A stretch of 64,000 nucleotides of DNA, from the sequence record MG592671.1; one strand, written 5' to 3'. The notes under the pieces were generated by a model that was not told where the DNA came from, ran no database searches, and saw only the letters and a list, made by a program, of their open reading frames with translations. Position 1 is the stretch's first letter. Each line of letters opens with the position of its first letter. This document shows positions 45,237 to 61,101 of the stretch, piece after piece. The translations under genes were made by a program, and so were the position numbers.

Positions 45237-45441
45237 TTTTATCAAAGTCTGGTGTGAATATAATATCAGCGGATCGTTTGGTGGAAACAACAACGAAGAA
45301 GTGTTAGAGTACAACGGTGATTCAGAAGTTGACGATATTGATCAACTAGTTCTTGATTTTATGAAGCGCAAAACAAACCTAACAGAAGAAGAGCTAGAAG
45401 ATCTTCATGGTTGGGAATGGCTTGTAATGGAAGAACTATAA
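45226..45441 (+). CDS. hypothetical protein
   Basis: ORF. Confidence 0.65.
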   Translation: MASNFIKVWCEYNISGSFGGNNNEEVLEYNGDSEVDDIDQLVLDFMKRKTNLTEEELEDLHGWEWLVMEEL

Positions 45442-45450
45442 TAAAAAATT

Positions 45451-45542
45451 GGCGGGTTGGTAGAGTTTGGCTTATTGCACCTGACTTGAAATCAGGCGAA
45501 CCTTAAACGGTTCCGAGGGTTCGAATCCCTCACCCGCTTCCA
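45451..45542 (+). tRNA. tRNA-Ser(UGA)
   Basis: Class II cloverleaf, loop CTTGAAA, CCA; discriminator U. Confidence 0.9.
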
Positions 45543-45544
45543 AT

Positions 45545-45620
45545 GCAGGGATAGCTCAGTAGGTAGAGCACGTGATTGAAAATCACGGTCGCGCCAGTTC
45601 AATTCTGGCTCCTTGCACCA
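45545..45620 (+). tRNA. tRNA-Phe(GAA)
   Basis: 76 nt, loop TTGAAAA, CCA. Confidence 0.92.
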
Positions 45621-45723
45621 ACAGTGCGTACTCCTCTAATACACCTCGGTAATATTACGTTTACGCCTTCTTAATTTGTTAGTCTGTGATGGAAAAGAAA
45701 AATAATCTCAAGGAGATAAAACA

Positions 45724-45930
45724 ATGGCTAAATCCTATGTACAGATCAAGTACCTTACAGTAAGCGAACTTGATAAACTAAATGACAAGCGTTTAGTGGA
45801 AGTGCTAAAAGTTGCTCGTAAACACTTCAAGATTCTTGAAGCTGGTGAATTTACTGTTGACGAAGTTGCGTCAGCTGAAACATACCACAACCAAGTCAAA
45901 GCTATTAGCGAGACTCGTAGTAACGTATAG
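45724..45930 (+). CDS. hypothetical protein
   Basis: SD AAGGAG. Confidence 0.7.
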   Translation: MAKSYVQIKYLTVSELDKLNDKRLVEVLKVARKHFKILEAGEFTVDEVASAETYHNQVKAISETRSNV

Positions 45931-45942
45931 TAATCTACGTAC

Positions 45943-46031
45943 AGGGAATGTTCTTGTCAGCGGTCTCCAAAACCGTCGAGAATAAACAGACTTGTGGTGC
46001 TCTAGGGGTTCGATTCCTCCATTCCCTGCCA
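45943..46031 (+). tRNA. Atypical tRNA-Trp(CCA) lacking a normal D-arm
   Basis: Acceptor AGGGAAT/ATTCCCT-G-CCA, loop CTCCAAA, T-loop TTCGATT; only ~10 nt where the D-arm should be. Confidence 0.65.
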
Positions 46032-46047
46032 AATTTTATAAGATATT

Positions 46048-46269
46048 ATGAAAAGTTATAAAAGTAATTGCTTATTTGAAGCAATAAAACTACGATTTAA
46101 AATACCTAACAGTTCATTTAAAATGAAGTGGACAGAACAAAGTTGGATATTCCCTCATTGTTATGTTGAGACCGAAACGCATAAGATTGCTTTTGTTGGA
46201 TTATATTCCGATGAACCACCTTTAGCCCATTTTTGGTACATAGGTAGAATAAAAAGTAGATTGAAATAA
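46048..46269 (+). CDS. hypothetical protein
   Basis: ORF between tRNAs. Confidence 0.6.
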   Translation: MKSYKSNCLFEAIKLRFKIPNSSFKMKWTEQSWIFPHCYVETETHKIAFVGLYSDEPPLAHFWYIGRIKSRLK

Positions 46270-46272
46270 TTC

Positions 46273-46362
46273 GGAGGCATGGCAGAGCGGCTTATCGCGC
46301 ACCCCTGCTAAGGGTGTAGACCTTAATAGGTCTCGTTGGTTCAAATCCAACTGCCTCCGCCA
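46273..46362 (+). tRNA. tRNA-Ser(GCU)
   Basis: Class II, loop CTGCTAA, G73-CCA. Confidence 0.93.
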
Positions 46363-46364
46363 AT

Positions 46365-46453
46365 AGAGAGATGACTGAGTGGCTTAAGGTACTCGCTTGG
46401 AAAGCGAGAGGAGGCATAGCTTCCCGCAGGTTCGAATCCTGTTCTCTCTGCCA
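46365..46453 (+). tRNA. tRNA-Ser(GGA)
   Basis: Class II, loop TTGGAAA, G73-CCA. Confidence 0.93.
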
Positions 46454-46478
46454 ATATATTTTTAAACAAGGACTTAAT

Positions 46479-46724
46479 ATGTTCGTAGTAATTTTTGGTC
46501 AACCAGGTTGCCCATTCTGCACAAAAGCAGTAGATCTAGCTGAAAAATATAAAACAGAGCGCGATGATTTCAACTATCGTTATGTTGATATCAAAGCAGA
46601 AGGCATTAGCAAAGCTGATCTTTCAAAAACAGTAGGTGAAGAAGTGACCACAGTGCCACAAATCTTCATTGATCAAACACCAATTGGTGGTTACACGCAA
46701 TTTGAAGCATACAATTTAGACTAG
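46479..46724 (+). CDS. grxA: Glutaredoxin 1
   Basis: GQPGCPFC, TVPQIF, IGGY; start corrected to ATG46479. Confidence 0.93.
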   Translation: MFVVIFGQPGCPFCTKAVDLAEKYKTERDDFNYRYVDIKAEGISKADLSKTVGEEVTTVPQIFIDQTPIGGYTQFEAYNLD

Positions 46725-46738
46725 GAGTAAAACAGCAA

Positions 46739-47194
46739 GTGGAACACGTCATTACGTTCCTTCAGGATTACCTGTCCTGGATCATGAACGGTGTATCGAT
46801 GGTGGCAGCATATTGTCTTTCTAATCAGAGAGCAGTCGTTGGTCGATACTTAGGTGCAACAGGTGCATCTCTTTTTATATTATACGGCGTGGTGACAAAT
46901 CAGCCTGCTTTTGTGGTAGCTGATATCATCTTCCTGTACATTTACATTAGTGCAGTTTTGAAGTTCAATAAGAAACGAGATTCTTATCGTGAAAAAGCAG
47001 CGGATGATGAAGAAACTATTGCTCAAATGCGAAAGATCATCAAACGTGCTAATACAATTGAATTAGAAATTCTTGAAACACGTATTGGTAAGCAAACGAA
47101 AAAGAAACTTGAACTCCGTAAATCATTACAGAAGCAACTTTATATTCTGTTGAAGATTGGCGAAAAGATTGAAAATGACATCGAGGACGAGTAA
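46739..47194 (+). CDS. Membrane protein with a C-terminal coiled coil
   Basis: Three short TM segments; SD AGGAG. Confidence 0.65.
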   Translation: MEHVITFLQDYLSWIMNGVSMVAAYCLSNQRAVVGRYLGATGASLFILYGVVTNQPAFVVADIIFLYIYISAVLKFNKKRDSYREKAADDEETIAQMRKIIKRANTIELEILETRIGKQTKKKLELRKSLQKQLYILLKIGEKIENDIEDE

Positions 47195-47208
47195 AATCGT
47201 CCTTTTTT
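47184..47208 (+). terminator. Terminator
   Basis: AGGACGA-GTAAAA-TCGTCCTTTTTT. Confidence 0.75.
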
Positions 47209-47223
47209 GTGACTAAAATTTAT

Positions 47224-47342
47224 GGGCTCATGGCGAAGCGGGATCGCGATTTAGTTTAGTACCTAGATCTAGGAGTACGCATCCGCAACACTCTTAACCG
47301 GCATGATCGGTGACGTTGGTTCGAATCCAACTGAGTCCACTA
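47224..47342 (+). ncRNA. tRNA-like RNA with G3.U70/A73 and a replaced anticodon arm
   Basis: GGGCTCA/TGAGTCC-A-CTA, D-arm and T-arm present. Confidence 0.65.
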
Positions 47343-47349
47343 TTAACTT

Positions 47350-47568
47350 GTCGAGCTGGAAAACAAAGCCTCTGAAACTGTAAAGCCTCCACAAGGTTAA
47401 CAGATTGTAGAAGATTCGTTATACTAAGAGAATCAGGGGAGATAATGTTTGGTCAGAGTAACAAATAGATATGGAATATTAGAGGAAAAGCTAGTAGACA
47501 GTGGAACTACTTGCAGAACTCTTTTAAGACGTTGAAACTACGGGGTTCGATTCCTCGTCTCGGCACAA
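47350..47568 (+). ncRNA. 219-nt RNA with tRNA-like termini
   Basis: GTCGAG/CTCGGC-A-CAA; T-arm CGGGG-TTCGATT-CCTCG. Confidence 0.55.
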
Positions 47569-47572
47569 AAAA

Positions 47573-47664
47573 GGAATACAATCGAAAAAGGGCTTGTAGT
47601 AGGCACTGAGACCCAGAAGCCCTGAAATACCCATTCAGATCGTCTGTAAGCAGTGCTGTATTCC
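47573..47664 (+). ncRNA. 92-nt pseudoknotted RNA element
   Basis: GGAATACA/TGTATTCC, AGGGCTT/AAGCCCT, GCACTG/CAGTGC. Confidence 0.55.
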
Positions 47665-47674
47665 TATTAACTAT

Positions 47675-47969
47675 GCCCCTGATGTTCAATACTTGAATAA
47701 GGGAATCCCTGTAAGGCTGGAGTCACCCGGAGAGACAGATTACGATACTATATCACTCACTAATACACTGGATCCAGATCGCGTGTTCGTGACTGTGACG
47801 GTAGTATAGTACGTGTCGTAAAGAGATGATTCCTGTGATACGGTATAAGCTGGTGTAGAACTCGCTCGTGAAGGTAGACTGAAAGCGGACCAAGTGTGAC
47901 TACTTGGCAAAATCCAGGAGTATGTTGAGACTATGAGTTGGGTGGTTCGATTCCACGCCAGGGGCAACA
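47675..47969 (+). ncRNA. ~295-nt RNA with tRNA-like termini
   Basis: GCCCCTG/CAGGGGC-A, T-arm GTGG-TTCGATT-CCAC, internal helices. Confidence 0.65.
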
Positions 47970-48032
47970 ATTCAGGATAACGCAAACGCATTATCCTCAT
48001 TAATATGTGTTAATATAATACAACAACATTAT

Positions 48033-48103
48033 CCCCGTTCCCTAACGTGACACTACAGAAATAATAGAGTTGCTGGACGTTCGAATCGTCAAGCGGGGTC
48101 TAA
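48033..48103 (+). pseudogene. Degenerate tRNA-like element
   Basis: CCCCGTT/AGCGGGG and GACG-TTCGAAT-CGTC only. Confidence 0.45.
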
Positions 48104-48131
48104 TCATCCTTAATATCAAAGGTACTTCATA

Positions 48132-48869
48132 ATGGATAATATCCTTCTGTTCGCTGGACACAACACGTCAAAACGTGGCGGCATGGCCGATTTCGTTGCT
48201 GCATTTAGTTCTGTTTATGCAGCACAAAAGTTTATTGAAAACGAGAACACCCAACACACCCTGCTTGACACACTCCCAAGTTTACAGTGGGCACATTTGT
48301 ATAACACAAATGAAGGTCGTATTGTGCAGAAAGGCAAGATCGAGATCTGGGGTCGTGAAGATATTGGAAATGAAGATGATGAAGAGACTAAGTTCACATG
48401 GTCACCGTGTGATGATGAAAAGGATCTTCAACCTCTAATGGTTCAAGCAGCTAACGACAATAGTGCTCGTGAAAAGGCCGAAGAAGAACGTATTGCTAAA
48501 GAAGAAGCAAAACTTGCTGCTGAACAGGCTATTGAAGATTCGGTTGCTAATACTATCATTCGCGTAGTTCCCTTTGATCTAGGCGTTATTGACTCTGTAG
48601 TTGATGAAATTGAAGTTCAATTAGAGTTTGCATTTAATCTTGAAGCAATGAAGCAAGAAGGTGAAATCACCAATCGACACGTAAAAGTATTGACTATTTC
48701 ATTTTCAGATGAAGATAAAGCTCTACTTGAGAGTATGGGTGGTCCTAGTGCGCCAGGTCATTGGGTAAGTAAAGCTCAGCAGCATTTTGATGACGAAATG
48801 ATCATGGCATTTTTTGAAAACGAAGTTCTAACCGAGGACGAAGTTAGCTCAGTAGCAGAGGTAGCTTAA
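48132..48869 (+). CDS. Acidic hypothetical protein
   Basis: 245-aa ORF. Confidence 0.8.
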   Translation: MDNILLFAGHNTSKRGGMADFVAAFSSVYAAQKFIENENTQHTLLDTLPSLQWAHLYNTNEGRIVQKGKIEIWGREDIGNEDDEETKFTWSPCDDEKDLQPLMVQAANDNSAREKAEEERIAKEEAKLAAEQAIEDSVANTIIRVVPFDLGVIDSVVDEIEVQLEFAFNLEAMKQEGEITNRHVKVLTISFSDEDKALLESMGGPSAPGHWVSKAQQHFDDEMIMAFFENEVLTEDEVSSVAEVA

Positions 48870-49237
48870 TGGCTGACTTTACTTATGAAGATGCTATAGC
48901 ATCACCTGAGGGCACTACCTTTTGGGTATGTGCTCACTCTCGTAGGGATGTCACTAAGAAAGCACAGCGTTATCAAGAACCACAGCAAGCAGTTGTGGTA
49001 AGTGACGGTGCAGTAATTCGTGGATCGAATTTTCTTGTCCTTCTTAATAACAAGGGCAATATGACCAAGAAGAAAGTCATTCGCACATCTACTTATATCT
49101 ATGATGATAAGGATGAGTGTGCAGCTAGATTCAATGCGTTAAGTATTGAGATTCGAGATCGCTATATGGATTACTCTCGATACGTGGCAGAACAAGCTAC
49201 AGCGCTGAGCAAGCTAATTGACAAATACAGCAAATAA
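48869..49237 (+). CDS. hypothetical protein
   Basis: TAATG coupling. Confidence 0.75.
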   Translation: MADFTYEDAIASPEGTTFWVCAHSRRDVTKKAQRYQEPQQAVVVSDGAVIRGSNFLVLLNNKGNMTKKKVIRTSTYIYDDKDECAARFNALSIEIRDRYMDYSRYVAEQATALSKLIDKYSK

Positions 49238-49460
49238 CGGGATATACTGAAAAGGGCATCTCCGAAGCTATCATCCTAGGAAATGTGGCGATCATTGTTG
49301 TCGGTTATTAGGTATATTCAAGTCTACTCCGAAAGCACGGGCTGACGCGGGAGCGTTGGGCGAAGTAGAGGTTCAATTCCTCTAGCACACTTGATAACAA
49401 ATCGGGAGAGTGTGTTCTGGGTGAAATATTAGGGTGCGAGTCCCTTAAGTAGACGCCCGT
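49237..49460 (+). ncRNA. 224-nt structured RNA with a permuted tRNA-like domain
   Basis: T-arm followed by GCACACT/AGTGTGT hairpin; closed by GTCTACT/AGTAGAC and ACGGG/CCCGT. Confidence 0.6.
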
Positions 49461-49485
49461 AATTAACTACATGGAAGGATCAAAT

Positions 49486-49929
49486 ATGGCAAAGGTAATT
49501 GTCTCTACAGAACGAGAAACTATTTCGGAATACTCTTCTTCAGAGAAATATGGCGATTGGAGCTCAGACCACACTTATCGAGTTACTGGAGTGCGCTTGT
49601 GCTCATCGATAGATGATGCATGGGAAGAAACTTTCGAACTAGGTGATGTTAAAGCTGGCGACGAAGTTCATGTCTTATCTATTGTATACGGAACTGGCGA
49701 CAGTTTTGGCAAATCATCTGGTAATGGCGAAGTGGTAATGGTTTACAAGAGCCGTGCCTTAGCTGAGCAGGCATACAGTATGTATGATGAAAAGTCTGGC
49801 GATTACTCGATCAAACTCCCGTTTGAAACTCCTAAAGGCACTGAATTCCGCGCTATTAGCAACCCAGCAGCTGGATATTTTGAGTGCTTGGAAAGTCTAG
49901 ATCTAGAAACATTCATTGTCGGAAACTAA
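49486..49929 (+). CDS. hypothetical protein
   Basis: SD GGAAGGA. Confidence 0.75.
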   Translation: MAKVIVSTERETISEYSSSEKYGDWSSDHTYRVTGVRLCSSIDDAWEETFELGDVKAGDEVHVLSIVYGTGDSFGKSSGNGEVVMVYKSRALAEQAYSMYDEKSGDYSIKLPFETPKGTEFRAISNPAAGYFECLESLDLETFIVGN

Positions 49930-49938
49930 CAATTTACT

Positions 49939-50853
49939 CTAATGTTTTATCCCTAGTTTTTCAAGTAACACCTGTTTGACATTATCATCGTATCTAATAC
50001 GTAATATATTTCCGAGTTCTTCAGCTTTGGCAGTTTTCACTGTATCTCGATGTTGAGCTCTATTAAATCCATCTGTATCTTTATGAAAGATTGGGACAAA
50101 TTCATAGTGCTGTTTGCCATCATACTCAACAAATAGATTATAATCAGGCAGATAGAAATCATAGTAATACTTACAATCAACATCGTTAACTCTGTATTGC
50201 TGAATATAAGTAATATTATTATCATCTAAGATCTTTTTAGTTTCAAGCTCACCTTTAGAAGTTCTACAATTAGGACAGCCTGATTTCATACTTATATGGG
50301 CACTGCCTTGTTGATAAAAAATTCCATGTTTAGAGCAAATAATAGGATGTCTATCATCATATGCGCTATAATCAATCAGTGAATAATCATACAAATCACC
50401 ATGAACATCTTTAGCTTTTTGAATAAATTCTTCTTGTGTTAGAGTATTTGATTTATTTCTTGATAGTTGCCCACAGACTTGACAACTGTGTTTGCCGTTG
50501 ATGAGATTATCAGGAGTCATTTCGAATTCTCCATGTTCAGAGCAGATTATCACAACTTTTGTGTGGGCTCCTTTATATACAACCTTACTAAGATCATATT
50601 TTTCACCATGAATCTTTTTGAAGTTCTCTATAAATTGTTCTTGCGTGATACTATTATTAGGTATAAAACAATCAGGACAGGAACCAGTTCTAGCACCTAA
50701 ATGATTTCTAGCCATACAAGAAAATTCTCCATGATCTGGGCATATTATAGTTACGGCACTTTGTCTGTTTTTGAAATTTTCTATTAACGAGTAATCAAAT
50801 CTATCGCCAAATTTACTTTTGGCTTTATTGATGAACTTTTCTAAATTAGTCAT
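49939..50853 (-). mobile_element. Free-standing homing endonuclease (CPxHGEF repeats plus DUF559-like domain)
   Basis: Three ICxxHGxF...CxxC repeats; YDFYL, VEYDGKQHY; antisense insertion. Confidence 0.8.
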
Positions 50854-50899
50854 GGTATAATCCTTATGTTATATCATATTTATAAAAAGGAGTGAGCCC

Positions 50900-51736
50900 G
50901 TGGGCAGCTGGTATGAAACTGACTTTCTTACAAATCTACCTATTCAAGACGATGATGAAGTGATGGTGTTCTTCTTAGAGCAACAACATGGATTAGTTCC
51001 TACAAGTTCTATAACTTATTCACATGATATATATCGACCTATAGGTATTCCTATTCAAGGGTGGTATGACGATTACGGTCGTTATAAACTTAATGAGGGT
51101 GATATAGTATATGATCATATGCTAGAACATCTACGTTCAAAAGTTATGCCTATGGAAGAAGGTTCTAATAGATATCACGAAAAAGCAGTAATCCCAGAAA
51201 CTATGACATGGGAAAACGTTTTCGAGAATATCCATGAAGAACGGCTAAAGACTCACTCGCACTACAACGGTTCTAAGAATCACATTGTTGAAGTAGCAAT
51301 TCATAGAAGCATTTATGATATGATGTCAGAAGAATGCACTACTTGGAAAGGCACTCAAACTTGGAACGATGAATACCAAGATCTAAAGGCCAAAATAGCT
51401 AAAGCTCGTGAAGATATTGATAACGGAACTCCTGAGAGAATTGCTAGTGCTATTATGCGAATGGAAATAGGAGAAATCCTAGGCAGGTTCGCACCATTTG
51501 ATAGTGTTTCTTTCAAAGACATGTATTATGCAGCAGTTGATGATGGGCAAGAAGATCATTATCTAAGAGCACTTGCTAAAATGAAAGTATTCAATACAAA
51601 CTTATCCATGTTGCGTAAATCTTGGATGCCACAAGCTGGCACAGGATCACAGGATGCTGAATTTGAATTACACATAAAACTAAATGGTGTAGTAACAATG
51701 TTTGCTCATAATAAGAAGAGGAGTTACGATGAATAA
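50900..51736 (+). CDS. hypothetical protein
   Basis: GTG start; SD AAGGAG. Confidence 0.75.
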   Translation: MGSWYETDFLTNLPIQDDDEVMVFFLEQQHGLVPTSSITYSHDIYRPIGIPIQGWYDDYGRYKLNEGDIVYDHMLEHLRSKVMPMEEGSNRYHEKAVIPETMTWENVFENIHEERLKTHSHYNGSKNHIVEVAIHRSIYDMMSEECTTWKGTQTWNDEYQDLKAKIAKAREDIDNGTPERIASAIMRMEIGEILGRFAPFDSVSFKDMYYAAVDDGQEDHYLRALAKMKVFNTNLSMLRKSWMPQAGTGSQDAEFELHIKLNGVVTMFAHNKKRSYDE

Positions 51737-51983
51737 TCCCGGCTATCATGTTACCCTTATAGATAAAGGTTCACTAGGTGAGCTTTCAAAGATCTTAGAG
51801 GAAATCAACGAAGCTATTGATGCGGAAAAACAGGGTTGTAAAATTATGACCCTTATTGAACTATCTGATATGATAGGAGCAACAAAGCGCTACCTTGAAA
51901 AACATCATCCTGATATAACACTTGACGATTTGCTAACAATGGCAGATATTACACGTCGCGCATTTGAGAACGGACACAGATAA
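51729..51983 (+). CDS. MazG-like all-alpha pyrophosphatase-like protein
   Basis: SKILEE..E..DA and IELSDMIGA acidic pattern. Confidence 0.5.
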   Translation: MNNPGYHVTLIDKGSLGELSKILEEINEAIDAEKQGCKIMTLIELSDMIGATKRYLEKHHPDITLDDLLTMADITRRAFENGHR

Positions 51984-52540
51984 TGAATATAGACACATCG
52001 CTTATTTTTCAGGCCATAAAACACTACGAAGAGTATGGCTATAATATGGTCACTGTTCCTATGTTAGTAGATGAAGAAGCATCTAGGCTAACAAAGCCTA
52101 AGGGATGCAAAGATCTATATCATAAAGATAAAGTCTACGTAGCATCTGCTGAACAGAGTTTTATCCAGTTGTATAACGAAGGTGAGCTAATGACAGGAAA
52201 ATATATGGCATTAACTCCTTGTTATAGAGATGAACCTGAATTAGATGATACACACTTCAATATCTTTTTGAAGCTAGAACTAATCAAAGTTTATCGAGAA
52301 GGCTATAAACCAGGTGCCTCTGTTGTGTTAGATGATGCATATGATTTCTTTAAGCCATTAGCAAAATACAACACAAAACTTGTTAGTTTTGGAAATAATA
52401 ATCACGATATAGAAATAAATGGACTGGAAGTAGGCTCGTATGGATATCGTCAGTTCTCTGATGGTACATGGTACGTTTACGGAACAGGAATAGCTGAGCC
52501 AAGACTTAGTTACGCATTAGGGAAATCCAATGACGAATGA
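51983..52540 (+). CDS. Stand-alone class II aminoacyl-tRNA synthetase-like catalytic core
   Basis: VASAEQ, motif 2 PCYRDE..H..F-KLE, IEINGLEVGS, motif 3 GTGIAEPRL; no anticodon-binding domain. Confidence 0.7.
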   Translation: MNIDTSLIFQAIKHYEEYGYNMVTVPMLVDEEASRLTKPKGCKDLYHKDKVYVASAEQSFIQLYNEGELMTGKYMALTPCYRDEPELDDTHFNIFLKLELIKVYREGYKPGASVVLDDAYDFFKPLAKYNTKLVSFGNNNHDIEINGLEVGSYGYRQFSDGTWYVYGTGIAEPRLSYALGKSNDE

Positions 52541-52763
52541 TGAATACTTTGAATACCTGCATGATCTACAAAAGCAGGGATATATGATATACGATAATTC
52601 TCGTATGGTTCAGGACTTTATCTCAATTGAAAAAATTGATGGAGTATGGAGGTATTTTTATCACGAAGACACTGAAGGTGAAATAGACTGTGATATGGAT
52701 GGATGCTTTACTGTATACAAGGATGTCACTGCTGAAGTAAAGCAATCAACTACAATGTTATAA
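52530..52763 (+). CDS. hypothetical protein
   Basis: ORF. Confidence 0.6.
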   Translation: MTNDEYFEYLHDLQKQGYMIYDNSRMVQDFISIEKIDGVWRYFYHEDTEGEIDCDMDGCFTVYKDVTAEVKQSTTML

Positions 52764-52797
52764 TATAGTAATAATAAAATATTAGTAGAGAAATATT

Positions 52798-53817
52798 ATG
52801 AAACATTATACTTATTGGATTATAGATACTGTAAATGCTATGTATTACCACGGTGTTCATAGCGATAATGATCCAGAAAATATCCATCACTACTCTGGGT
52901 CTTCTAAGTCACTGACATCAGCTATTCAACAATACGGAATATCAAATTTTATAAAGAGAGTTGAGCGTTATTTTGATACTAGGGAAGCAGCTAATAAGTG
53001 GGAAGCAACAGTACATAAGCGATTAGATGTAAAAAACCATAATAAATTTTATAACAATAATAATGCATCAGAAGATTTTACTGCCTACAATAAAGTTACA
53101 GTTAGAGATACAAGCGGTAATATATTTTCGGTAGATAAAAATGACAAAAGATATATTAGTGGTGAACTTGTTCATAATAATTTAGGTAAGCACATTGTAA
53201 TTGATTCAAATGGTGATGCGTTTAAAATATTAGCTAGTGATGAAAGATTTGTAAGTGGGGAGCTAAAAGACAGATTATCAGGAAAAGTTATCGTCAAAGA
53301 CGAAAACGATAATAATATTTTAGTAGAAACTACAGATACAAAATATTTAAGAGGTGAATACACCCACATTAATGCTGGTGTGGTAACAGTTAAGGATACA
53401 AACGGAAATACTATGCGGGTTTCAACAGACGATCCTAGATATATTTCAGGAGAGCTTGTTCATCTAACCACAGGGCGTGTGACTGTAAAAGATAAAGCAG
53501 GAAATCACATACAAGTAGACATTGATGATCCAAGAATTGATAATGGCGAGTTTACATATCTACAAGTTGGTAAAGTTCCAGTCAAAGATGAGAATGGTAC
53601 TATATTCCAAGTTGATGCCACTGACCCTAGATATATTTCAGGGGAATTAACACATCATCTTAAGGGGATTTCCAATAGTCACAAAGATAGAATTTGGATA
53701 ACTAATCCTATATTAAAGAAGAACAAGCGCGTTCTTAAAGATGATTTGGATTCTTGGTTACTGAAATCTGATTGGACTAAAGGTCGTAAAACTTACGCAA
53801 AAATAAAGGAATTATAA
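52798..53817 (+). mobile_element. GIY-YIG (Seg-like) homing endonuclease with six ~32-aa repeats
   Basis: HYTYWI...YYHGVH...YSGS; repeats VKD--G----V---DPRY-SGEL; own promoter at 52756. Confidence 0.8.
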
Positions 53818-55067
53818 TGTCTAAAGAAATAAAGAATGTAATAGTACAGCATTATGCTGGTAGCATATCTTATGGCACATCACTTCCTACGAGTGATACT
53901 GATATCCGCGGTATCTTCTGTGCTGGTGAAGAAAATATACGTACGCCGTTCTTTCCTATCCGTGAACAAACACTAGAAGATGAAGAAGATGGTAAGCTAT
54001 ATGAGCTTAGTAATTTCCTTAAGTTATACACTGATGGTAACCCGAATATCCTAGAATCTCTATGGGTAGATGATAGACACATCATTGAAGGTTCAGAAGC
54101 ATACGATATTCTTACTGAACACAGGCAAACTCTGCTGTCTAAAAAGGTTGCATTCACTTATAGCGGCTACGCTATTTCGCAACTACATCGTATCAAAGGC
54201 CACAACAAGTACATCAATAACCCAGCTAAAGAGACGCCACCACGTCAAATTGACTTTGTGAAGCTAGTTCATAACTTTACAGACAAAAAGATCTTTAAGA
54301 TCAATATGGAAGATATCCAAAACGGATACAGGTTAATACCATACGGTGGTGATTTATTTGGTGTTTATGAATCCCCGGGTTCCCAAACATTCGATCACTT
54401 GTTCACATTGAACACTAATTGTGATGCAGATCTAAGTGGCTTCTACACAAAGACTCGAACATTCACAGATAAGATAGCTGGATTCATTACAGGTAATCCT
54501 GATTTTGGAACACGCAAACTCCCACTGTTCATTGTATCGTTTAACCGTGAAGGTTACAAGAAATCAAAAGAGCATTGGAAATCTTACTGGAGCTGGAAGC
54601 GTAATCGTAACGAAGCACGACGTTTGCTTGAAGAAGAAAACGGATACGATACAAAACACGCTCAACATTTGGTAAGACTGCTGAATATGGCTGAAGAAAT
54701 CCTAACTGATGGTATAGTAAAAGTGTTCCGCCCTGATCGAGAATTATTATTAGATATTCGACATGGTAAGTTCTCTTTTGATGAGCTTATGGAAATGGTT
54801 GAAGGTAAGGATGAATACATCCGTGGAGAGTTGTACAAGAAATCTCCGCTACCAAAAGCACCTGATATCAAACTAGCTTCTAAAGTTCTCATAGATGCTC
54901 AAGATTGTTTCTGGAAAGAGCCAACAAAAGAAAAGCGTATTCAGAAAGCCAAAGATCGCATGTTTGATCGTCATCAAAAAGAAGAAGATCGCCGTGAAGC
55001 ACGTTTCTGTGAAAACATGGAACGACTACAAGAAAATCTGAAAGGTGATGATAATGAATCAGAATAG
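53817..55067 (+). CDS. RlaP-like (Nuc-transf) Pol-beta nucleotidyltransferase
   Basis: AGSISYGTSLPTSDTDIRGIF, GNPNILE, YDTKHAQHLVRL. Confidence 0.85.
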   Translation: MSKEIKNVIVQHYAGSISYGTSLPTSDTDIRGIFCAGEENIRTPFFPIREQTLEDEEDGKLYELSNFLKLYTDGNPNILESLWVDDRHIIEGSEAYDILTEHRQTLLSKKVAFTYSGYAISQLHRIKGHNKYINNPAKETPPRQIDFVKLVHNFTDKKIFKINMEDIQNGYRLIPYGGDLFGVYESPGSQTFDHLFTLNTNCDADLSGFYTKTRTFTDKIAGFITGNPDFGTRKLPLFIVSFNREGYKKSKEHWKSYWSWKRNRNEARRLLEEENGYDTKHAQHLVRLLNMAEEILTDGIVKVFRPDRELLLDIRHGKFSFDELMEMVEGKDEYIRGELYKKSPLPKAPDIKLASKVLIDAQDCFWKEPTKEKRIQKAKDRMFDRHQKEEDRREARFCENMERLQENLKGDDNESE

Positions 55068-55431
55068 TAGAGATTCACTTAGGAGTACTCTTAATGAGTA
55101 CTTCAGACTCTGTAATTCCTGTGAACAAGCAGGTATTGACATTGATGATGTCCATAATGACATTACAAAAACAGTCACTCAAGAAGGTGGTCCACAGAAG
55201 CTAGAAGATTTTCTAGTGAATACTGTTTGCTGTCCTAGCTGTGAAGGCGAGGCTGGCGAGAGTGTTGCTGATGGACACGACTGTTGGGGAAAAACAGAGT
55301 TCAGTTTTATCCCTTGTTTCAAATGTGACGGTAAAGGCTTTTTACCAGCTGATTATAAAGAACAAGAGAAGAACGAACGACGTAAAATGTACATACAGCT
55401 TCGTGAAGAATTTGGACACGAAGATATTTAA
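55054..55431 (+). CDS. Protein with a DnaJ-type CxxCxG zinc finger
   Basis: CPSCEG, CFKCDGKG. Confidence 0.7.
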   Translation: MNQNSRDSLRSTLNEYFRLCNSCEQAGIDIDDVHNDITKTVTQEGGPQKLEDFLVNTVCCPSCEGEAGESVADGHDCWGKTEFSFIPCFKCDGKGFLPADYKEQEKNERRKMYIQLREEFGHEDI

Positions 55432-55464
55432 TGTAATAAAGTCATAAAAATATGTTATAACATA
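55432..55464 (+). promoter_or_regulatory. Phage promoter variant, palindromic
   Basis: TGTAATA-N14-TGTTATAAC; TATGTTATAACATA palindrome. Confidence 0.6.
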
Positions 55465-55519
55465 TAGTAAGCAGACAGGCTGCTAACTAAAACTTATAAC
55501 ATATTCAAAAGAGGCTACT

Positions 55520-56077
55520 ATGTCAAAAGCTAAAAAGGCTGCAGAGGCTACTAGTAAAGCAACAAAAGGCGCTGTGAAAGGTGTCGGTAAAGGTTTATTA
55601 GGTGGACTCCAGTCAATCTGGAAATTCGGCGGTAAGTGGTTGTTACTAGCGAACGCATTCTCGTTCTTATGCGTTGCGGGAATTTATAACTGGATTGCAC
55701 CAGAGTATACAGTTGTTGGATACTTCCAAAATGCAATACAAAGTGGCGATCCACTATCGAATATGGTAGGTATGTCAATTGTAACGTTGCTCTTATTTGG
55801 CGCAATTGGCTATATGGCTAATAACACTAAGCGATCTTTAGGTTGGATCGGGTTAATCTTTATGTCAACACTCATCGGTCTTGTTGGTTTTTGGATGTTC
55901 ACACTTGGCACTTTTGATGGCGCGAGTACTGCATTCCTAGCAACTATTGCACAGATAGGTGTTTCTTTTGTGTTAGCTTTCGGCCTAGTGTACGCTAAAA
56001 TCGATAAGATTATAACCGGTCGTGTCAATACTGACTCCTACGATGTGGGCGGTGATGACGATGACGATGATCGATAA
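55520..56077 (+). CDS. Four-TM membrane protein
   Basis: Hydrophobic helices; acidic tail. Confidence 0.75.
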   Translation: MSKAKKAAEATSKATKGAVKGVGKGLLGGLQSIWKFGGKWLLLANAFSFLCVAGIYNWIAPEYTVVGYFQNAIQSGDPLSNMVGMSIVTLLLFGAIGYMANNTKRSLGWIGLIFMSTLIGLVGFWMFTLGTFDGASTAFLATIAQIGVSFVLAFGLVYAKIDKIITGRVNTDSYDVGGDDDDDDR

Positions 56078-56088
56078 TTGATCACTAA

Positions 56089-56111
56089 AGGGGAGGACTT
56101 GTCCTCCCCCT
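56089..56111 (+). terminator. GC-rich hairpin
   Basis: GGGGAGGAC/GTCCTCCCC. Confidence 0.6.
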
Positions 56112-56137
56112 ATTAACTTAATGTACGAGATTTAAAA

Positions 56138-56563
56138 ATGTCAAAATTAATTACTAACCTAAATAGTGATAACTTCGATTTTGAGGATATCCTGTACTTA
56201 AAAACCCGTTTAAAATTCAAGTTCAAAAATGAACCTGAAGTAAATGTAGACCTTAGTTTCTACCCTCATGATCGAGATTATGGATTCACAAAACGTTTCA
56301 AAAATTCATCCAAATGGGAAGAATATATGAGTATTCTTCGTAAAGCTAAAAACATTCTCAAAGAAGGACTAGTTGAAAATCTAGAACTTGAAACATACTC
56401 AACTGGTTATTACGCTGTTGATTCTGAGCATCGAACAATCTCACGTAAAGGAATGAGCGCAGTGATTAATAGCGAATGGAACGAACGTTATCGTATTGAT
56501 ACGCCAATTGAATCTGCGGAAGAAGTAATTTTGTGGACTAAAATGGTTCTTTTAGGCAAATAA
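56138..56563 (+). CDS. hypothetical protein
   Basis: ORF. Confidence 0.7.
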   Translation: MSKLITNLNSDNFDFEDILYLKTRLKFKFKNEPEVNVDLSFYPHDRDYGFTKRFKNSSKWEEYMSILRKAKNILKEGLVENLELETYSTGYYAVDSEHRTISRKGMSAVINSEWNERYRIDTPIESAEEVILWTKMVLLGK

Positions 56564-56571
56564 AGATTTAA

Positions 56572-56665
56572 ACACATGACAACAGAGTTATTTGGTTCAA
56601 ATCCAGGCTTGGCGGGTAAGACTGCATTGAAGCTTATTATTGGTATAAAGCACTACGTTATGTGT
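56572..56665 (+). ncRNA. 94-nt circularly permuted tRNA mimic (YrlA-like topology)
   Basis: Terminal stem ACACATGAC/GTTATGTGT; the T-arm precedes the D-arm. Confidence 0.55.
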
Positions 56666-56694
56666 CATTAACTTATAATATAACGAGCGTTTAA

Positions 56695-57117
56695 ATGTTT
56701 TGGAATGAAAATAAAAAGTGCGATACGTCTACAGATAATAATGTACTGCCAAAATATCGTAATCCAGATAATGAATTATACGGAACGTACGTTGTTGTTA
56801 GACCAAATATGTCAATAGACGATCTCGTTGCAATCCAAGATTGGGTTAAAGAGCATCCTAATTTGACACTAGTAACAATGCCAGTTGCTGACATCCTTGC
56901 TAATGCAAAAAGAAATGGCCAAGCACACGTATGTATTGATACTATTGGTAATGTTTCATCTGACATGAATCCCCATAAAGAGTTTCGCGAACTAACGTTA
57001 CATTTAAAGCCTACTGTATATTGGTATAATGTTGAGCCTGCTGTTATTGAGGTTCTAGGCAAGAAGTATGATAAGACTCAATTAGAAGAAGCTCTTAGAA
57101 ATATCGATTCAAAGTAA
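56695..57117 (+). CDS. hypothetical protein
   Basis: ORF. Confidence 0.7.
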   Translation: MFWNENKKCDTSTDNNVLPKYRNPDNELYGTYVVVRPNMSIDDLVAIQDWVKEHPNLTLVTMPVADILANAKRNGQAHVCIDTIGNVSSDMNPHKEFRELTLHLKPTVYWYNVEPAVIEVLGKKYDKTQLEEALRNIDSK

Positions 57118-57132
57118 CGCCGGAGGCAATGA

Positions 57133-57606
57133 ATGCAAGAGATCGAGCGTAAGTTTTTACCAGCACCTGGTGCAGTAATCCCGTTTACTTCAGATAATGA
57201 AGAAATCATCCAAATGTACATCCATGAAGAAGGCGAAGATACTGTATGTCGTTTACGTCTTATTGATGGCCACAAAGCGTTAATCACTCAGAAAGACAAA
57301 AGTCTAGATGGCGGGTTCTCATGTAATGAGCTTGAATCTCGTATCCCATATCATATAGGGTTAGTGATGTATGATGCGTGTGGTAATCCGCCTATCATCA
57401 AAGAACGTTATCGTATCCCACACGGCGAGTTAACTTTCGAAGTAGATGTATTTTCTGATCACAATAAAGGCTTAGTCCTTATTGAAATCGAAATGCCTTC
57501 TAAAGATACAGTTATCACGTTACCTGACTGGGTAGGCGAAGAAGTAACTTTAGATCCACGTTATAAAAACGTTAATCTAATAAAAAATCCATATGAACTA
57601 TGGTAA
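57133..57606 (+). CDS. CYTH (triphosphate tunnel metalloenzyme) protein
   Basis: QEIERKFL, RLR, K-RY, EVD-F, IEIE, EEVT-DPRYKN. Confidence 0.9.
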   Translation: MQEIERKFLPAPGAVIPFTSDNEEIIQMYIHEEGEDTVCRLRLIDGHKALITQKDKSLDGGFSCNELESRIPYHIGLVMYDACGNPPIIKERYRIPHGELTFEVDVFSDHNKGLVLIEIEMPSKDTVITLPDWVGEEVTLDPRYKNVNLIKNPYELW

Positions 57607-57612
57607 ACTAAT

Positions 57613-57785
57613 TTAAGCAGCAACTCGTGGTAGGGGAATGTAGACCCGCCTTGGGGAATCTAGGAGAGCTCAGAGGATACTTGCGGCACAGTTGAAGAGT
57701 GTTCCCTAATTCACGGGACGTGTAGCCTTAATGGCGAAGTGTAGACTGTTACTGGTTCAAGTCCAGTCCATCGAACGCTGCTTAA
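57613..57785 (+). ncRNA. tRNA-Leu-like RNA, copy 1 (expanded anticodon domain, extended acceptor)
   Basis: TTAAGCAGC/GCTGCTTAA; T-arm ACTGG-TTCAAGT-CCAGT. Confidence 0.6.
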
Positions 57786-57789
57786 TAAA

Positions 57790-57950
57790 ATGAAATACAG
57801 CAACTCGTTGTGGTGAAACTGGTAGACGCGCCTGGTTGGTACCTGCGTTGACTACCCCTGTAAAAAAAGGGGTCATAGACAATGGGACGCCCGGGATCCT
57901 TGTGAAAGGGGAGTGCAGGTTCGAGTCCTGTCTTCGAACGCTGTGTTCAT
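57790..57950 (+). ncRNA. tRNA-Leu-like RNA, copy 2
   Basis: D-arm GTGGTGAAACTGGTAGACGCG, V-arm, T-arm GCAGG-TTCGAGT-CCTGT; shares terminal motifs with copy 1. Confidence 0.65.
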
Positions 57951-57953
57951 ACT

Positions 57954-58063
57954 TGAGAAGATCATAAACAAAATTTGGTACGCGCTTCAGTTGTGAGGTT
58001 CAATTCCTCGAGGTTCTAGGTGACCAACGTCGACGTAGAGGTTCGAATCCTCCTTTTCAACCA
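57954..58063 (+). ncRNA. 110-nt CCA-ending tRNA-like RNA with two T-loops
   Basis: TGAGAAG/CTTTTCA-A-CCA. Confidence 0.6.
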
Positions 58064-58077
58064 AAAAATAATAGGAT

Positions 58078-58500
58078 ATGAGTATGAATCTTAATGAAAT
58101 CGAATTAGTCCCTAAAACTAAAACATTTTATGTTCGTTATACATCCAATCAGACTGGCGTGTATAAAATTGTTGGTACTTCTGAAGAAACATTTAAAAAT
58201 ATTCTTGTTGAACAGCACACAAAAATGCATAGAGCTAAACGATACGTTGATGAGTATCAAACAGAAGTTAACACTGCTCAACGCAAAATGAATAAACTTC
58301 GTGATGATTGTGATTTCACACATTACTACAATCAAGCACAGGATGATCGTAGTAACTATGAATACTACCTGGATCAACAAATGCCAAAATTCAAAAAGGC
58401 AGAAAAAGAATTCAATTTCTATTTTGATCAGATTAATCCAGATGCTGGCGAGTATATTACGCTGATGATGTGTTATGACGCAGAGTGGGTTTTTGAATGA
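58078..58500 (+). CDS. Coiled-coil hypothetical protein
   Basis: SD AGGA. Confidence 0.7.
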   Translation: MSMNLNEIELVPKTKTFYVRYTSNQTGVYKIVGTSEETFKNILVEQHTKMHRAKRYVDEYQTEVNTAQRKMNKLRDDCDFTHYYNQAQDDRSNYEYYLDQQMPKFKKAEKEFNFYFDQINPDAGEYITLMMCYDAEWVFE

Positions 58501-58577
58501 AAAAAGATTTTGCTGAATTGTTTATAGGGTTTGTTTTAGTTATGTTCGCTATAGCTATATTGCTTGAAGTTACGTAA
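58497..58577 (+). CDS. 26-aa membrane microprotein
   Basis: ATGA coupling; single TM. Confidence 0.5.
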   Translation: MKKDFAELFIGFVLVMFAIAILLEVT

Positions 58578-58647
58578 TGTTACGCAATCGTAATAAAATG
58601 TTATAATAATACATAAGCAGTTAGCAACAAGAGCTGCTTAGTAAATT
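58578..58647 (+). promoter_or_regulatory. Promoter plus 5' leader hairpin (duplicated at 59775-59828)
   Basis: TGTTACG-N14-TGTTATAAT; ATAAGCAGTTAGCAAC. Confidence 0.7.
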
Positions 58648-58723
58648 GGGCCTTTAGCTCAGTGGTTAGAGCAGTCGACTCATAATCGATTGGTCCGGGG
58701 TTCAAGTCCCTGAAGGCCCACCA
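58648..58723 (+). tRNA. tRNA-Ile2(CAU)
   Basis: 76 nt, loop CTCATAA; body resembles enterobacterial ileX rather than Met tRNAs. Confidence 0.85.
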
Positions 58724-58843
58724 AACCTAGATAGATTTCTAGCTTTGCGACCTTGCGAGTTGCGAAGTGCTACTGAAAAGTAGGGGTAAGCTAAACTCGT
58801 ATCAAGTGTTGCCTACTCGGAGCACTTAAATGGAAAAGCGTCA

Positions 58844-59302
58844 ATGTACTTTCCAGCCTGCATGCGAGGATTAACTAGAGAGGTTCTTATGTCTGTCCAA
58901 GCATCTTGGGAAAAAGATTTTGAAGAAAAATATGGCTTTGAGCATATTTTTGAAGAGAACATGATCCAAGCTATAAAGGTTTATTTCCAGTTCGGATTAG
59001 AACCAGGATCTTGTACTACTTGTATTCTTCGTGGTGAACTAGAAGAAGCTCGTGCAAGAGCACATCCTCACTTATTACGATGTGAATTTAATTCAGCTGT
59101 AACTAACATTGAGCGTTTGTATCATACAATTCGTGAGTTGCTTGGTGAAATGGTTCTTGAATATAGCTTAGATCCGAATCACGGATATAAGTTTCCAGGG
59201 ATAAATAATATTCCAGAACATGAACAAGCGATGATATTTTTAGAATCGCCGTTGTTACAGTATTGGATGAAAGAAGCTGCTGACGCGGAGTTTATTAGAT
59301 AG
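58844..59302 (+). CDS. hypothetical protein
   Basis: ORF; start uncertain. Confidence 0.7.
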   Translation: MYFPACMRGLTREVLMSVQASWEKDFEEKYGFEHIFEENMIQAIKVYFQFGLEPGSCTTCILRGELEEARARAHPHLLRCEFNSAVTNIERLYHTIRELLGEMVLEYSLDPNHGYKFPGINNIPEHEQAMIFLESPLLQYWMKEAADAEFIR

Positions 59303-59309
59303 GTTCTAT

Positions 59310-59534
59310 ATGGGCAAGACATATAAGGATACCGGTAAGTATTATCTCGGTAAAAATAAAGATATTCCAAAATATCTAAAAGATAAACTTCCTGAAGGTC
59401 GCTTCGGACATGCTGCTGGGCTTCGTTGGGGAAATTCTCGTAAAAACAGAGCGAAAGATAGTCAAATATTAAATCAGATTGAACGTTCTCAATTAAATCG
59501 AAAAATTGGTAAAGATGATGACTCAAGCTCATAA
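59310..59534 (+). CDS. Small basic protein
   Basis: MGKTYKD; K/R-rich. Confidence 0.65.
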   Translation: MGKTYKDTGKYYLGKNKDIPKYLKDKLPEGRFGHAAGLRWGNSRKNRAKDSQILNQIERSQLNRKIGKDDDSSS

Positions 59535-59787
59535 AACTATTGGTGCTTTAGTTGAACTACACGATGATGTATTTGACTTAGAGGGCTATAAAGATTATTA
59601 TACACACCTTGTTCATTTGCGTGGTGTGGTATTTGAAGTTCAAAATTGTGATGGCGCGCATACGCACGTTATTGATAGAAATAGTGGCGTAGAATTTGGC
59701 CTACATTCAGAGAATTTCAAAACTATTTCAAAAGAAAAGAAAAAAGCTTACGATAAAGCACAACGCTTCGTAAATAAAATGTTATAA
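59515..59787 (+). CDS. hypothetical protein
   Basis: ORF. Confidence 0.65.
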   Translation: MMTQAHKTIGALVELHDDVFDLEGYKDYYTHLVHLRGVVFEVQNCDGAHTHVIDRNSGVEFGLHSENFKTISKEKKKAYDKAQRFVNKML

Positions 59788-59828
59788 TTAATTATAAGCA
59801 GTTAGCAACGTAGACTGCTTGATAAATT

Positions 59829-59916
59829 GGAGGTATTGGGGAGTAGACAAACCCAAGGGACTGTAAATCCCTCGCTTACGAGAGTAGCTACGGTGGTGCA
59901 AATCCATCTACCTCCA
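59829..59916 (+). tRNA. tRNA-Tyr(GUA)
   Basis: Loop CTGTAAA, long V-arm; T-loop TGCAAAT; 3' CAA rather than CCA. Confidence 0.85.
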
Positions 59917-59972
59917 CAAACTGTTGTCATATAAAATGTTATAATAACTATATACTAATATAGGGATTTATA

Positions 59973-60848
59973 ATGTATTATATGACAAGAGATGAAAGTT
60001 GGAAACAACCTAACGGCAAATATAAGTGTCCAGAATGTGATAAAGAATATAGTGCAAAAGGTATAATGAGTCATTATATTTCACAGCATACTGACCAAGA
60101 AGGTTTTGCTAAAAAAGCAGAGCAAGATAAAGCTAATAATAATTCTAGATTATCTGCGTATAAGAAAGATCCAACTAAATGTAATCAATGTTTAGCTGTT
60201 TTATCATATGACAAACGCAAAAATAAATATTGTTCACATAGTTGTGCTGCTAAATCTTCAAACGCCTCAAGAAGCAAAGTTGATACATCAGGAACTAAAG
60301 ATTGTAACTGTATATCTTGTGGTAATACTATTAAGATAGCAAAAAATGCATCAGCAACGCGATCTAAATGTGTGAAATGCAAGAAGCCAAAAACTGCAAA
60401 AAAACCTAAAAATAACCCAGTTAAAGATAAAAACCCAGGCGAGCACACTAAGGTTAAGCCGTGCATTATATGCGGTAAGTATCATACTAAAATATCAGGA
60501 AAATATTGCAATATATGCCAACCTAATGTTAGGCTTTATAGGGCAAGAGCTGAATTTACATTTAATGTATATGACTATCCAGATAGATTCAATATTGCTC
60601 TTATTGACCAATATGGATGGTATTCCCCTGGCGGTAAAAAGAAAACTAAAAATATTAACGGTATCTCAAGAGATCATAAATATTCAGTATCAGAAGGATT
60701 TGCTAACAAAGTAGACCCTAAATTATTATCTCATCCAGCAAATTGTGAGATAATGTTACAGCTGGATAATGTTAAAAAGAGACATCGTAGTTCTATTACT
60801 TTAGATGAGTTAAAACAGCTAATCGAAGAATGGGATAAAAAACATTAA
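59973..60848 (+). mobile_element. HNH-type homing endonuclease with zinc fingers, inserted in the tRNA cluster
   Basis: CPEC, CNQC..YCSHSC, SRDH...HPANC...N; own promoter at 59937. Confidence 0.7.
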
Positions 60849-60858
60849 AATAAATTGT

Positions 60859-60934
60859 TGGGGTATAGCTCAATTGGTAGAGCACCTGGTTTTGATCCAG
60901 GTTGTTGGAGATTCGAGTTCTTCTACCCCAGCCA
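60859..60934 (+). tRNA. tRNA-Gln(UUG)
   Basis: 76 nt, loop TTTTGAT, G73-CCA. Confidence 0.9.
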
Positions 60935-60936
60935 TT

Positions 60937-61011
60937 GGATGAGTAGCTCAGAGGCAGAGCGGGGAGCTGTTAACTCCTAGGTCGGGATTTCGAAATTCCC
61001 CTCGTCCGCCA
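60937..61011 (+). tRNA. tRNA-Asn(GUU)
   Basis: Loop CTGTTAA, G73-CCA. Confidence 0.88.
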
Positions 61012-61022
61012 ATTAACAAAAT

Positions 61023-61099
61023 CGGAACTTAGCTCAGTTTGGTAGAGTACACCGTTTGGGACGGTGTTGTCAGAAGTTCGAATCTTCTAGTTCCGACCA
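61023..61099 (+). tRNA. tRNA-Pro(UGG)
   Basis: Loop TTTGGGA, C1-G72, A73-CCA. Confidence 0.92.
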
Positions 61100-61101
61100 A
61101 T

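Follow-up and report, generated by a model that had tools for sequence, protein, structure and literature searches.

The intergenic gap at positions 49238-49485 (+ strand) of a 64-kb window of Vibrio phage 2.275.O._10N.286.54.E11 encodes a stable RNA of about 200 nucleotides (nt). The window is the whole stretch of DNA analyzed here (bases 124001-188000 of record MG592671.1, 348,911 bp; host Vibrio cyclitrophicus, Nahant collection), and positions are those of the window unless stated otherwise. The gap lies between an open reading frame (ORF) of 122 aa (48869-49237) and the next gene, inside a tRNA zone of about 43 kb that starts at 45451, extends past the end of the window and holds 19 annotated tRNAs and many small ORFs, all in a single orientation (+ strand). 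An ORF scan of the gap found no reading frame of 36 aa or more. The RNA belongs with other enlarged or rearranged tRNA-like RNAs of this zone, where at least 13 T-arm elements are unannotated. We give an even chance to the reading that it is a stable non-coding, tRNA-derived RNA of the kind represented by RNAC and RNAD of phage T4, acting as a tRNA mimic, as a processing mark, or as both.

Expression was read from public RNA libraries of this phage-host pair in the form of assembled contigs; these libraries are probably those of Yang et al. 2021, Cell Systems, and their small-RNA and tRNA-seq runs include SRR8667477 and SRR8667482. Two of them carry NEB small-RNA adapters on tRNA ends and were on that ground classed as small-RNA libraries. 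Here the element was covered by one contig at 49262-49436 (X7, depth 249) and another at 49290-49463 (X8, depth 293), while the bins over the flanking ORFs held only 0, 0.6, 27 and 40. High coverage of the element next to near-empty flanks indicates a real, discrete and stable RNA, and the near-empty flanks rule out DNA carry-over. The contigs set the minimum extent of the RNA at 49262-49463 (+ strand); no adapters were attached to them, so the exact termini are not fixed. An initial annotation, made from the sequence alone, had proposed a 224-nt RNA at 49237-49460, and an RNA of about that size does exist, with a 3' limit within a few bases of the predicted 49460. True phage tRNAs reached depths of 1,600-7,900 in the same small-RNA libraries, and the abundance of the element was 3-15% of theirs.

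A single contig of the total-RNA library (48450-50736) spans the element, which indicates co-transcription with both neighboring genes. In a third library, the upstream long-RNA contig stops at 49323, 2 nt from the boundary of the helix termed P2 below, and the next one starts at 49485; these breaks are no more than suggestive of excision. Both small-RNA contigs cross the 17-nt loop of the acceptor-like helix described below, showing that intact RNA exists, and minor cleaved forms remain compatible with this result.

A check of the sequence recovered every motif of the initial annotation at the position assigned to it, all on the + strand. The outermost helix, P1, would pair ACGGG (49237-49241), which shares the last base of the upstream stop codon, with CCCGT (49456-49460). 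Since the small-RNA contigs start at 49262 and 49290, downstream of the 5' strand of P1, this helix is only a candidate in the stable species. A 5' leader with little predicted structure (49242-49321) carries UCCGAAG at 49262-49268. P2, which would close the 3' domain, has seven Watson-Crick pairs between GTCTACT (49322-49328) and AGTAGAC (49448-49454), the latter followed by G and CCC, not by CCA. Within it, the hairpin CTGACGC-GGGA-GCGTTGG (49342-49359), with a GNRA tetraloop, occupies the same place as the V arm of the Y RNAs known as YrlA, and GGCGAAG (49359-49365), an exact match to the YrlA motif GNCGAAN0-1G, stands mid-molecule just 5' of T-arm 1. T-arm 1 itself, TAGAGG-TTCAATT-CCTCTA (49366-49384), has a canonical T-loop identical to that of the phage tRNA-Phe. 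It is adjoined, with 0 nt between, by a closed acceptor-like hairpin (49385-49415) made of GCACACT (49385-49391), the 17-nt loop (49392-49408) and AGTGTGT (49409-49415), with a 2-nt linker after it. The linker region, TC-TGGGT-GAAATATT (49416-49430), has TC at what may be the place of U8/N9 of a tRNA and TGGGT at 49418-49422; its GGG (49419-49421) could instead pair with CCC at 49442-49444. Hairpin 2, AGGG-TGCGAGT-CCCT (49431-49445), is a T-arm variant with G at position 55. The element therefore has both the genuine T-arm directly adjoined by a closable 7-bp helix and the second T-loop-like hairpin that had been claimed for it.

Chance expectations differ among these motifs. The pattern GTTCRAWTC occurs 16 times in the window, all on the + strand, against 3.0 expected, and of the 11-nt GGTTCRAWTCC all 20 occurrences fall in the 43-kb tRNA zone, with none on either strand of the other 306 kb. 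The T-loop of the element is clearly beyond chance. A 7-bp helix adjoining a T-arm is expected by chance at 0.008-0.02 per T-arm and was found for this element only, 1 of the 22 T-arm-like hairpins scanned in the window; because 22 T-arms were tried, the adjoining helix is only suggestive. By our own arithmetic, a 7-bp Watson-Crick match such as P2 has p of about 0.08, and about 0.1 exact GNCGAAN0-1G matches are expected in 224 nt. Near copies of the GNCGAAG motif are UCCGAAG at 49262, in which the first G differs, and UCCGAAAG at 49328. Two other pairings or identities were tried and rejected. GCACACT could pair with AGTGTGC at 49116 in a 276-nt enlarged tRNA-like RNA, but small-RNA depth was 0 over 49043-49239; and T-arm 1 read as the anticodon arm of a class II tRNA (anticodon CAA) would have U at 37, no D-arm and wrong junction lengths.

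The loop of hairpin 2, UGCGAGU, has U54, C56, a purine at 57, A58 and a closing G-C pair, and departs from the T-loop pattern only by G55, at a position that is normally pseudouridine. Two T-loops of the phage's own tRNAs also have G at 55, namely those of tRNA-Cys (UGCGAAU; L010:12913, record 192913) and tRNA-Tyr (UGCAAAU; window 59896). In the tRNA arrays of other phages, tRNA-like genes that have proper acceptor stems use the identical GGGUGCGAGUCCC hairpin as their T-arm, and one of these genes ends in CCA. Unannotated UGCGAGU tRNA-like genes of other phages lie at L016:550-610 (-), L017:933-990 (-) and L014:3028-3100 (+); among these, one is an acceptor stem and T-arm ending in CCCA, and one is tRNA-His-like. 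No D-loop marks were found in hairpin 2, which has no GG and lies 13 nt from the 2-nt linker where a D-arm should begin. The permuted T-acceptor-D order proposed initially thus stands in part: the V hairpin, T-arm and closed stem follow one another as in YrlA, but the D part has neither a D-arm nor a GG-type D-loop. Taken with P2, hairpin 2 would instead form an acceptor/T-arm pair whose acceptor strand begins 6 nt past the T-loop, a spacing common to RNA B and RNA C of the same zone (described below).

Folding predictions separate the well-supported helices from the rest. When 49237-49463 was folded, P1 had a mean pairing probability of 0.98; the GGGA hairpin reached 0.80-0.95 across all folds and T-arm 1 reached 0.96-0.98, and by these predictions the three are the only helices with firmly strong thermodynamic support. 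In the same full-length fold, P2 had a probability of 0.01, the closed acceptor helix 0.06 and hairpin 2 0.00, compared with 0.39, 0.41 and 0.28 in the fold of the expressed stretch (49262-49463). P2 reached 0.98 in the isolated 3' domain, and over all end choices the closed acceptor helix ranged from 0.04 to 0.41 and hairpin 2 from 0.00 to 0.28. P1, one of the nested stems in the initial annotation, is well predicted; the acceptor helix and hairpin 2 do not exceed 0.06 in the full-length ensemble. Within the isolated 3' domain, the fold originally drawn lies 3.3 kcal/mol above the minimum, which replaces the acceptor helix and hairpin 2 by one long hairpin pairing 49385-49396 with about 49427-49438; this competitor likewise begins directly after T-arm 1. 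Compared with shuffled sequences, the 5' part (49237-49330) had a z-score of +0.5 and the 3' domain (49322-49454) a z-score of -2.4, better than shuffles, and these values of the parts identify the 133-nt 3' domain as the structured unit. We infer that this domain adopts a multi-branch fold closed by P2 and containing the GNRA hairpin and the canonical T-arm. Its predicted inner wiring would be either an acceptor-like helix stacked on T-arm 1 together with the variant T-arm, or a single longer hairpin.

Stable RNAs from the tRNA cluster of T4 have been known for about fifty years without a function. RNAC and RNAD (species 1 and species 2) are stable RNAs made from this cluster (PMC3014915; PMC9697503) and have no known role (PMC3014915). 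The element shares with them what describes this kind of RNA: it is non-coding, lies in the tRNA region of a lytic phage and on the tRNA strand, and yields a discrete stable RNA with tRNA-like elements. This is a descriptive class and not a homology family, and there is no sequence similarity between the element and the T4 RNAs. Near the 3' end of T4 rnaC stands a canonical T-arm, CCGGG-UUCGAAU-CCCGG, and its multi-branch fold has a z-score of -4.6, against -2.4 for the element, and the latter in its 3' domain only. The element also differs in having two T-arm-type hairpins, one of them internal and putatively stacked on a closed helix, and in lying between protein genes and not directly beside a tRNA.

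If the element is an RNA of this kind, it most likely arose from neighboring tRNA genes, as in the dimeric-tRNA route proposed for YrlA. It would be transcribed within long + strand transcripts of the tRNA region, and its fold would let a stable piece survive. Through its stacks of T-arm and acceptor type it could then serve as ligand or substrate of proteins that recognize the tRNA elbow and the acceptor-T helix; candidate readers are RNase P, TruB/TrmA and the phage CCA-adding enzyme. It would probably work by mimicking tRNA, drawing off tRNA-directed factors of host or phage as a decoy or sponge, by punctuating processing between mRNAs, or both.

Several results weigh against this proposal. 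Searches of phage, viral, metagenome and genome collections found no homologue or paralogue of the element, which leaves its helices with no conservation or covariation support beyond a single sequence. The whole 224 nt and the expressed 49262-49463 fold no better than shuffled sequences (z-scores of -1.0 and 0.0, respectively). The helix adjoining T-arm 1 may be due to chance, with p of about 0.16-0.35 once 22 T-arm tries are allowed for. Processing at P2 is not borne out by the small-RNA contigs, which extend 32-60 nt upstream of this helix and 8 nt beyond it, and assembled contigs in general carry no strand, true ends or rare forms.

The main rival is that the element is a relic, a functionless leftover of rearranged tRNA genes with two T-arm fragments that accumulates through co-transcription and nuclease-resistant hairpins. 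We regard this as possible and as distinctly less probable than an even chance. The missing homologues and the unremarkable overall fold just described suit a relic, as does the failure of the Rfam tRNA model to find anything tRNA-like besides the T-arms. The upstream ORF is unique to this phage, which points to an evolutionarily young locus, and the region is rich in rearrangement-promoting genes of homing-endonuclease type (DUF723, 49939-50853; GIY-YIG, 52798-53817). A decaying relic is harder to reconcile with T-loops that are either perfect or absent across the zone, with no tail of decayed copies, or with a T-arm 1 that is flawless though the rest of its parent tRNA is gone. The junction spacings are also tRNA-like (0 nt from the T-arm to the acceptor helix, then 2 nt), and the abundance, at 3-15% of that of true tRNAs, likewise counts against a leftover. 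A second and unlikely alternative treats the gap as an intercistronic cis element, a structured spacer governing how the mRNA is processed, how stable it is or how the downstream gene is translated, with the stable RNA as a by-product. P1 would bring the upstream stop codon (49235-49237) beside 49460, 14 nt from the Shine-Dalgarno sequence; the total-RNA contig runs through the element and both genes, and the third-library contigs break at 49323 and 49485. Relatives of the downstream gene in five other contigs, however, have short and unrelated upstream spacers, a canonical T-arm is no feature of known leaders, and no terminator/anti-terminator pair was found.

The remaining alternatives assign the element to known permuted RNAs. 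YrlA RNAs are defined by a 5'-proximal GNCGAAN0-1G motif, by a closing stem and by lying up to 4 kb from a same-strand Ro60/TROVE gene; their T and D stem-loops are near-invariant with a variable closed acceptor stem between, a V hairpin often precedes the T stem-loop, and an origin from dimeric or tandem tRNAs has been proposed (PMC4201824; bioRxiv 10.1101/312249). The element is not a YrlA member, since it has no Rfam match, no D stem-loop and no TROVE gene in the phage and is about twice the usual 80-130 nt. A cmscan search of 49100-49600 (501 nt) against all 4227 families of Rfam 15, which presumably include YrlA, returned no family match at E values up to 10, and no Y RNA, tmRNA (transfer-messenger RNA) or tRNA. 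The search for a Ro60/TROVE gene that the initial annotation had called for was likewise negative: no product or InterPro entry of this kind occurs among the 509 annotated phage features (mostly the depositors' InterPro annotation), a Pfam scan of the flanking ORFs found no TROVE, and the only vWA-like phage protein (235 aa) is below the Pfam threshold. That the RNA is nevertheless a true Y RNA, a permuted tRNA mimic with a Ro60-binding module that works with a Ro60/Rsr protein (host-encoded, if any) to steer an exonuclease, strikes us as improbable. The V hairpin, T-arm, closed acceptor-like stem and 2-nt linker do come in the YrlA order, and either P2 or P1 could close the element as the YrlA closing stem does, but the predicted energies favor a different pairing by 3.3 kcal/mol. 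GGCGAAG matches the GNCGAAN0-1G motif exactly, three NNCGAA(N)G copies occur against about 0.4 expected (our arithmetic, post hoc), and UCCGAAG at the expressed 5' limit has UCCGA in common with the vertebrate Ro60 site GGUCCGA. The 7-bp acceptor stem is as in M. smegmatis YrlA, an RNase P substrate (PMC4201824), a gene of the RlaP RNA-repair pathway lies 4.4 kb downstream, and a tandem-tRNA origin is probable for both. The exact motif nevertheless stands mid-molecule and not near the 5' end, and the D place holds a 13-nt linker and a T-like hairpin, UGCGAGU without GG, in place of the conserved D stem-loop. The element may still have the topology of YrlA and its proposed origin from tandem tRNAs. 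It is very improbable that the element works in translation as a two-piece tmRNA, or as a permuted or split tRNA, after a cut within the 17-nt loop. The arrangement, in which the T-arm and acceptor 3' strand precede the spacer and the acceptor 5' strand, would fit, as would the CCA-adding enzyme of the phage. Although its models cover permuted tmRNA, ARAGORN found no tmRNA at the locus even at lowered thresholds, in agreement with Rfam. The membership in YrlA or two-piece tmRNA suggested initially was not upheld. The discriminator is not followed by CCA, and the pair at 3:70 is G3:C70 or U3:A70 and not the alanine identity pair G3:U70, with a tail of TTGAT; only 45 nt of the element follow the acceptor 5' strand, and there is no tag reading frame. 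An anticodon arm, a D-arm and a bulge-helix-bulge splicing motif are absent by sequence and Rfam. Cleavage in the 17-nt loop, for which the initial annotation had proposed a test, was not seen: contigs bridge the spacer intact and no cleavage joints were reported, although minor cleaved forms could escape contigs. ARAGORN in intron mode did call a tRNA at 48845-49454, which we rejected for its poor stems, the acceptor stem having 2 mismatches and 2 G-U among 7 pairs; its 514-nt "intron" holds an ORF.

A more specific form of the tRNA-mimic reading, which we also hold to be unlikely, is a Ro60-independent, YrlA-like permuted mimic that arose from tandem tRNA genes and belongs to a battery of at least 13 orphan T-arms that the phage would deploy during infection and that could occupy or misdirect tRNA-directed enzymes. 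If this were true, the battery would be a new class of phage counter-defense or takeover RNAs, with anticodon nucleases of the host or its tRNA-degrading machinery as possible targets. Many such RNAs appear to be encoded by this jumbo phage, several of them seen expressed in infected-cell libraries, and the element has the most unusual wiring of them, with an internal T-arm that would stack on a closed acceptor-like helix, as in YrlA. Should these RNAs be functional mimics, a cultured and transcriptome-profiled phage-host pair would make the role of phage tRNA-cluster RNAs testable; should they be relics, they would document a route from tandem tRNA genes to permuted tRNA mimics of the YrlA type.

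The absence of homologues was consistent across several kinds of search. The phage itself has no close relative among 50,697 phage records (megablast and blastn returned only self matches, with 100% identity over the stretch tested). Relatives of the downstream gene (P0002-P0007, 36-53% identity) were found in five contexts, none of which has the element upstream, and a search of IMG/VR with both flanking proteins found no related locus. The exact pattern of T-arm 1 and the acceptor strand occurred 0 times in viral contigs and 0 times in GTDB genomes. A looser two-anchor pattern (T-loop 1, 38-64 nt, GGTGCGAGTCC) matched 4 viral and 88 metagenome loci; these were rejected as homologues, with covariance model R1 scoring 17 bits or less (80 of the 88 metagenome and all 4 viral loci) and the matches being tandem tRNAs or tRNA-likes. 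No paralogue beyond the T-loop was found in the phage genome by blastn-short (first 230 kb) or by R1 (all 349 kb). Two Logan contigs, L012 and L013, match the window without a difference and give no information on variation.

The genes around the element offer further context. A search of 5.8 billion proteins returned no relative of the upstream ORF. Two starts compete for the downstream gene, ATG 49471 in the record (152 aa) and ATG 49486 with other gene callers (147 aa); a Shine-Dalgarno sequence, AAGGA at 49474-49478, favors the latter. Directly past this gene, the DUF723 protein is encoded on the - strand, the sole minus-strand gene close to the element; it has zinc-ribbon-like motifs and is homing-endonuclease-like, and its position is consistent with a locus shaped by mobile-element activity. 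The GIY-YIG gene is followed by that of a 416-aa "nucleotidyltransferase" (53817-55067), a Pol-beta-family enzyme of the RlaP RNA-repair pathway (PF10127, E = 6e-11). Elsewhere the phage genome encodes two RNA ligases, the CCA-adding enzyme NVP2275O_348, PTH2 and queuosine-pathway genes.

The perfect T-loops (GGTTCRAWTCC) of the tRNA zone, counted over window 45400-64000 and L010:1-32000 (record 169-212 kb), fall into 7 within annotated tRNAs and 13 orphans. Copies with 2 mismatches showed no excess in the zone, which indicates that the orphan T-loops are being maintained and not decaying. Three of the T-arm RNAs, B, C and D, lie in a stretch of 792 nt without an annotated gene (47340-48131), all on the + strand. 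RNA B (47349-47566) has a small-RNA contig ending at 47566, its discriminator position, and RNA C (47675-47966) has an 8-bp closing stem (TGCCCCTG/CAGGGGCA) at whose first base small-RNA contigs begin (47674/5); the contig ends of both, in the same small-RNA libraries as above, thus coincide with acceptor-type stems. RNA D (48033-48099) consists of a 7-bp acceptor stem and a T-arm only. Upstream of this unit are a promoter-like site (47169-47197) and a terminator-like hairpin (47183-47204), and the total-RNA contig over it (47203-48122) is conspicuous in depth.

Next to the unit lies the annotated 117-nt "tRNA-OTHER" (47224-47340), which the intron mode of ARAGORN interprets as a tRNA-Leu(UAG) carrying 31 extra nt at 37/38. 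This insert is kept in an abundant small-RNA contig (47224-47331, depth 554), where no spliced joint was seen, and the best fold is a six-helix enlarged cloverleaf (z-score of -2.5). A 5' adapter junction at 47257 falls between nt 33 and 34, the place cut by anticodon nucleases of the PrrC type. Like the element, RNAs B, C and D and "tRNA-OTHER" lie in the tRNA zone on the same strand, appear in the small-RNA libraries and combine an acceptor-type closing stem with a T-arm. They have no sequence similarity to it beyond the T-loop, however, and the element is the only one with an internal T-arm adjoined by a closed 7-bp helix.

Other tRNA-like features occur elsewhere in the zone. An unannotated 89-nt tRNA-like gene at 45943-46031 has a 7-bp acceptor stem, an encoded CCA and a loop CUCCAAA, in which CCA may be a Trp anticodon; its D-arm is poor and its variable region long. 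One small-RNA library has a 3' adapter attached directly after 46030. The tRNA look-alikes at 57620-57775 and 57799-57942 are paralogous and class-II-like, with GCAGCAACTCGT ... TCGAACGCTG as common flanks; ARAGORN in intron mode gives the second a D-arm of tRNA-Leu type and 48 nt inserted at 37/38, and it scores only 18.5 bits with the Rfam tRNA model. Just beyond them, a 110-nt element (57953-58062) with an 8-bp closing stem carries tandem T-arms, whose T-loops are at 57999-58005 and at 58042-58048, and has a CCAA tail.

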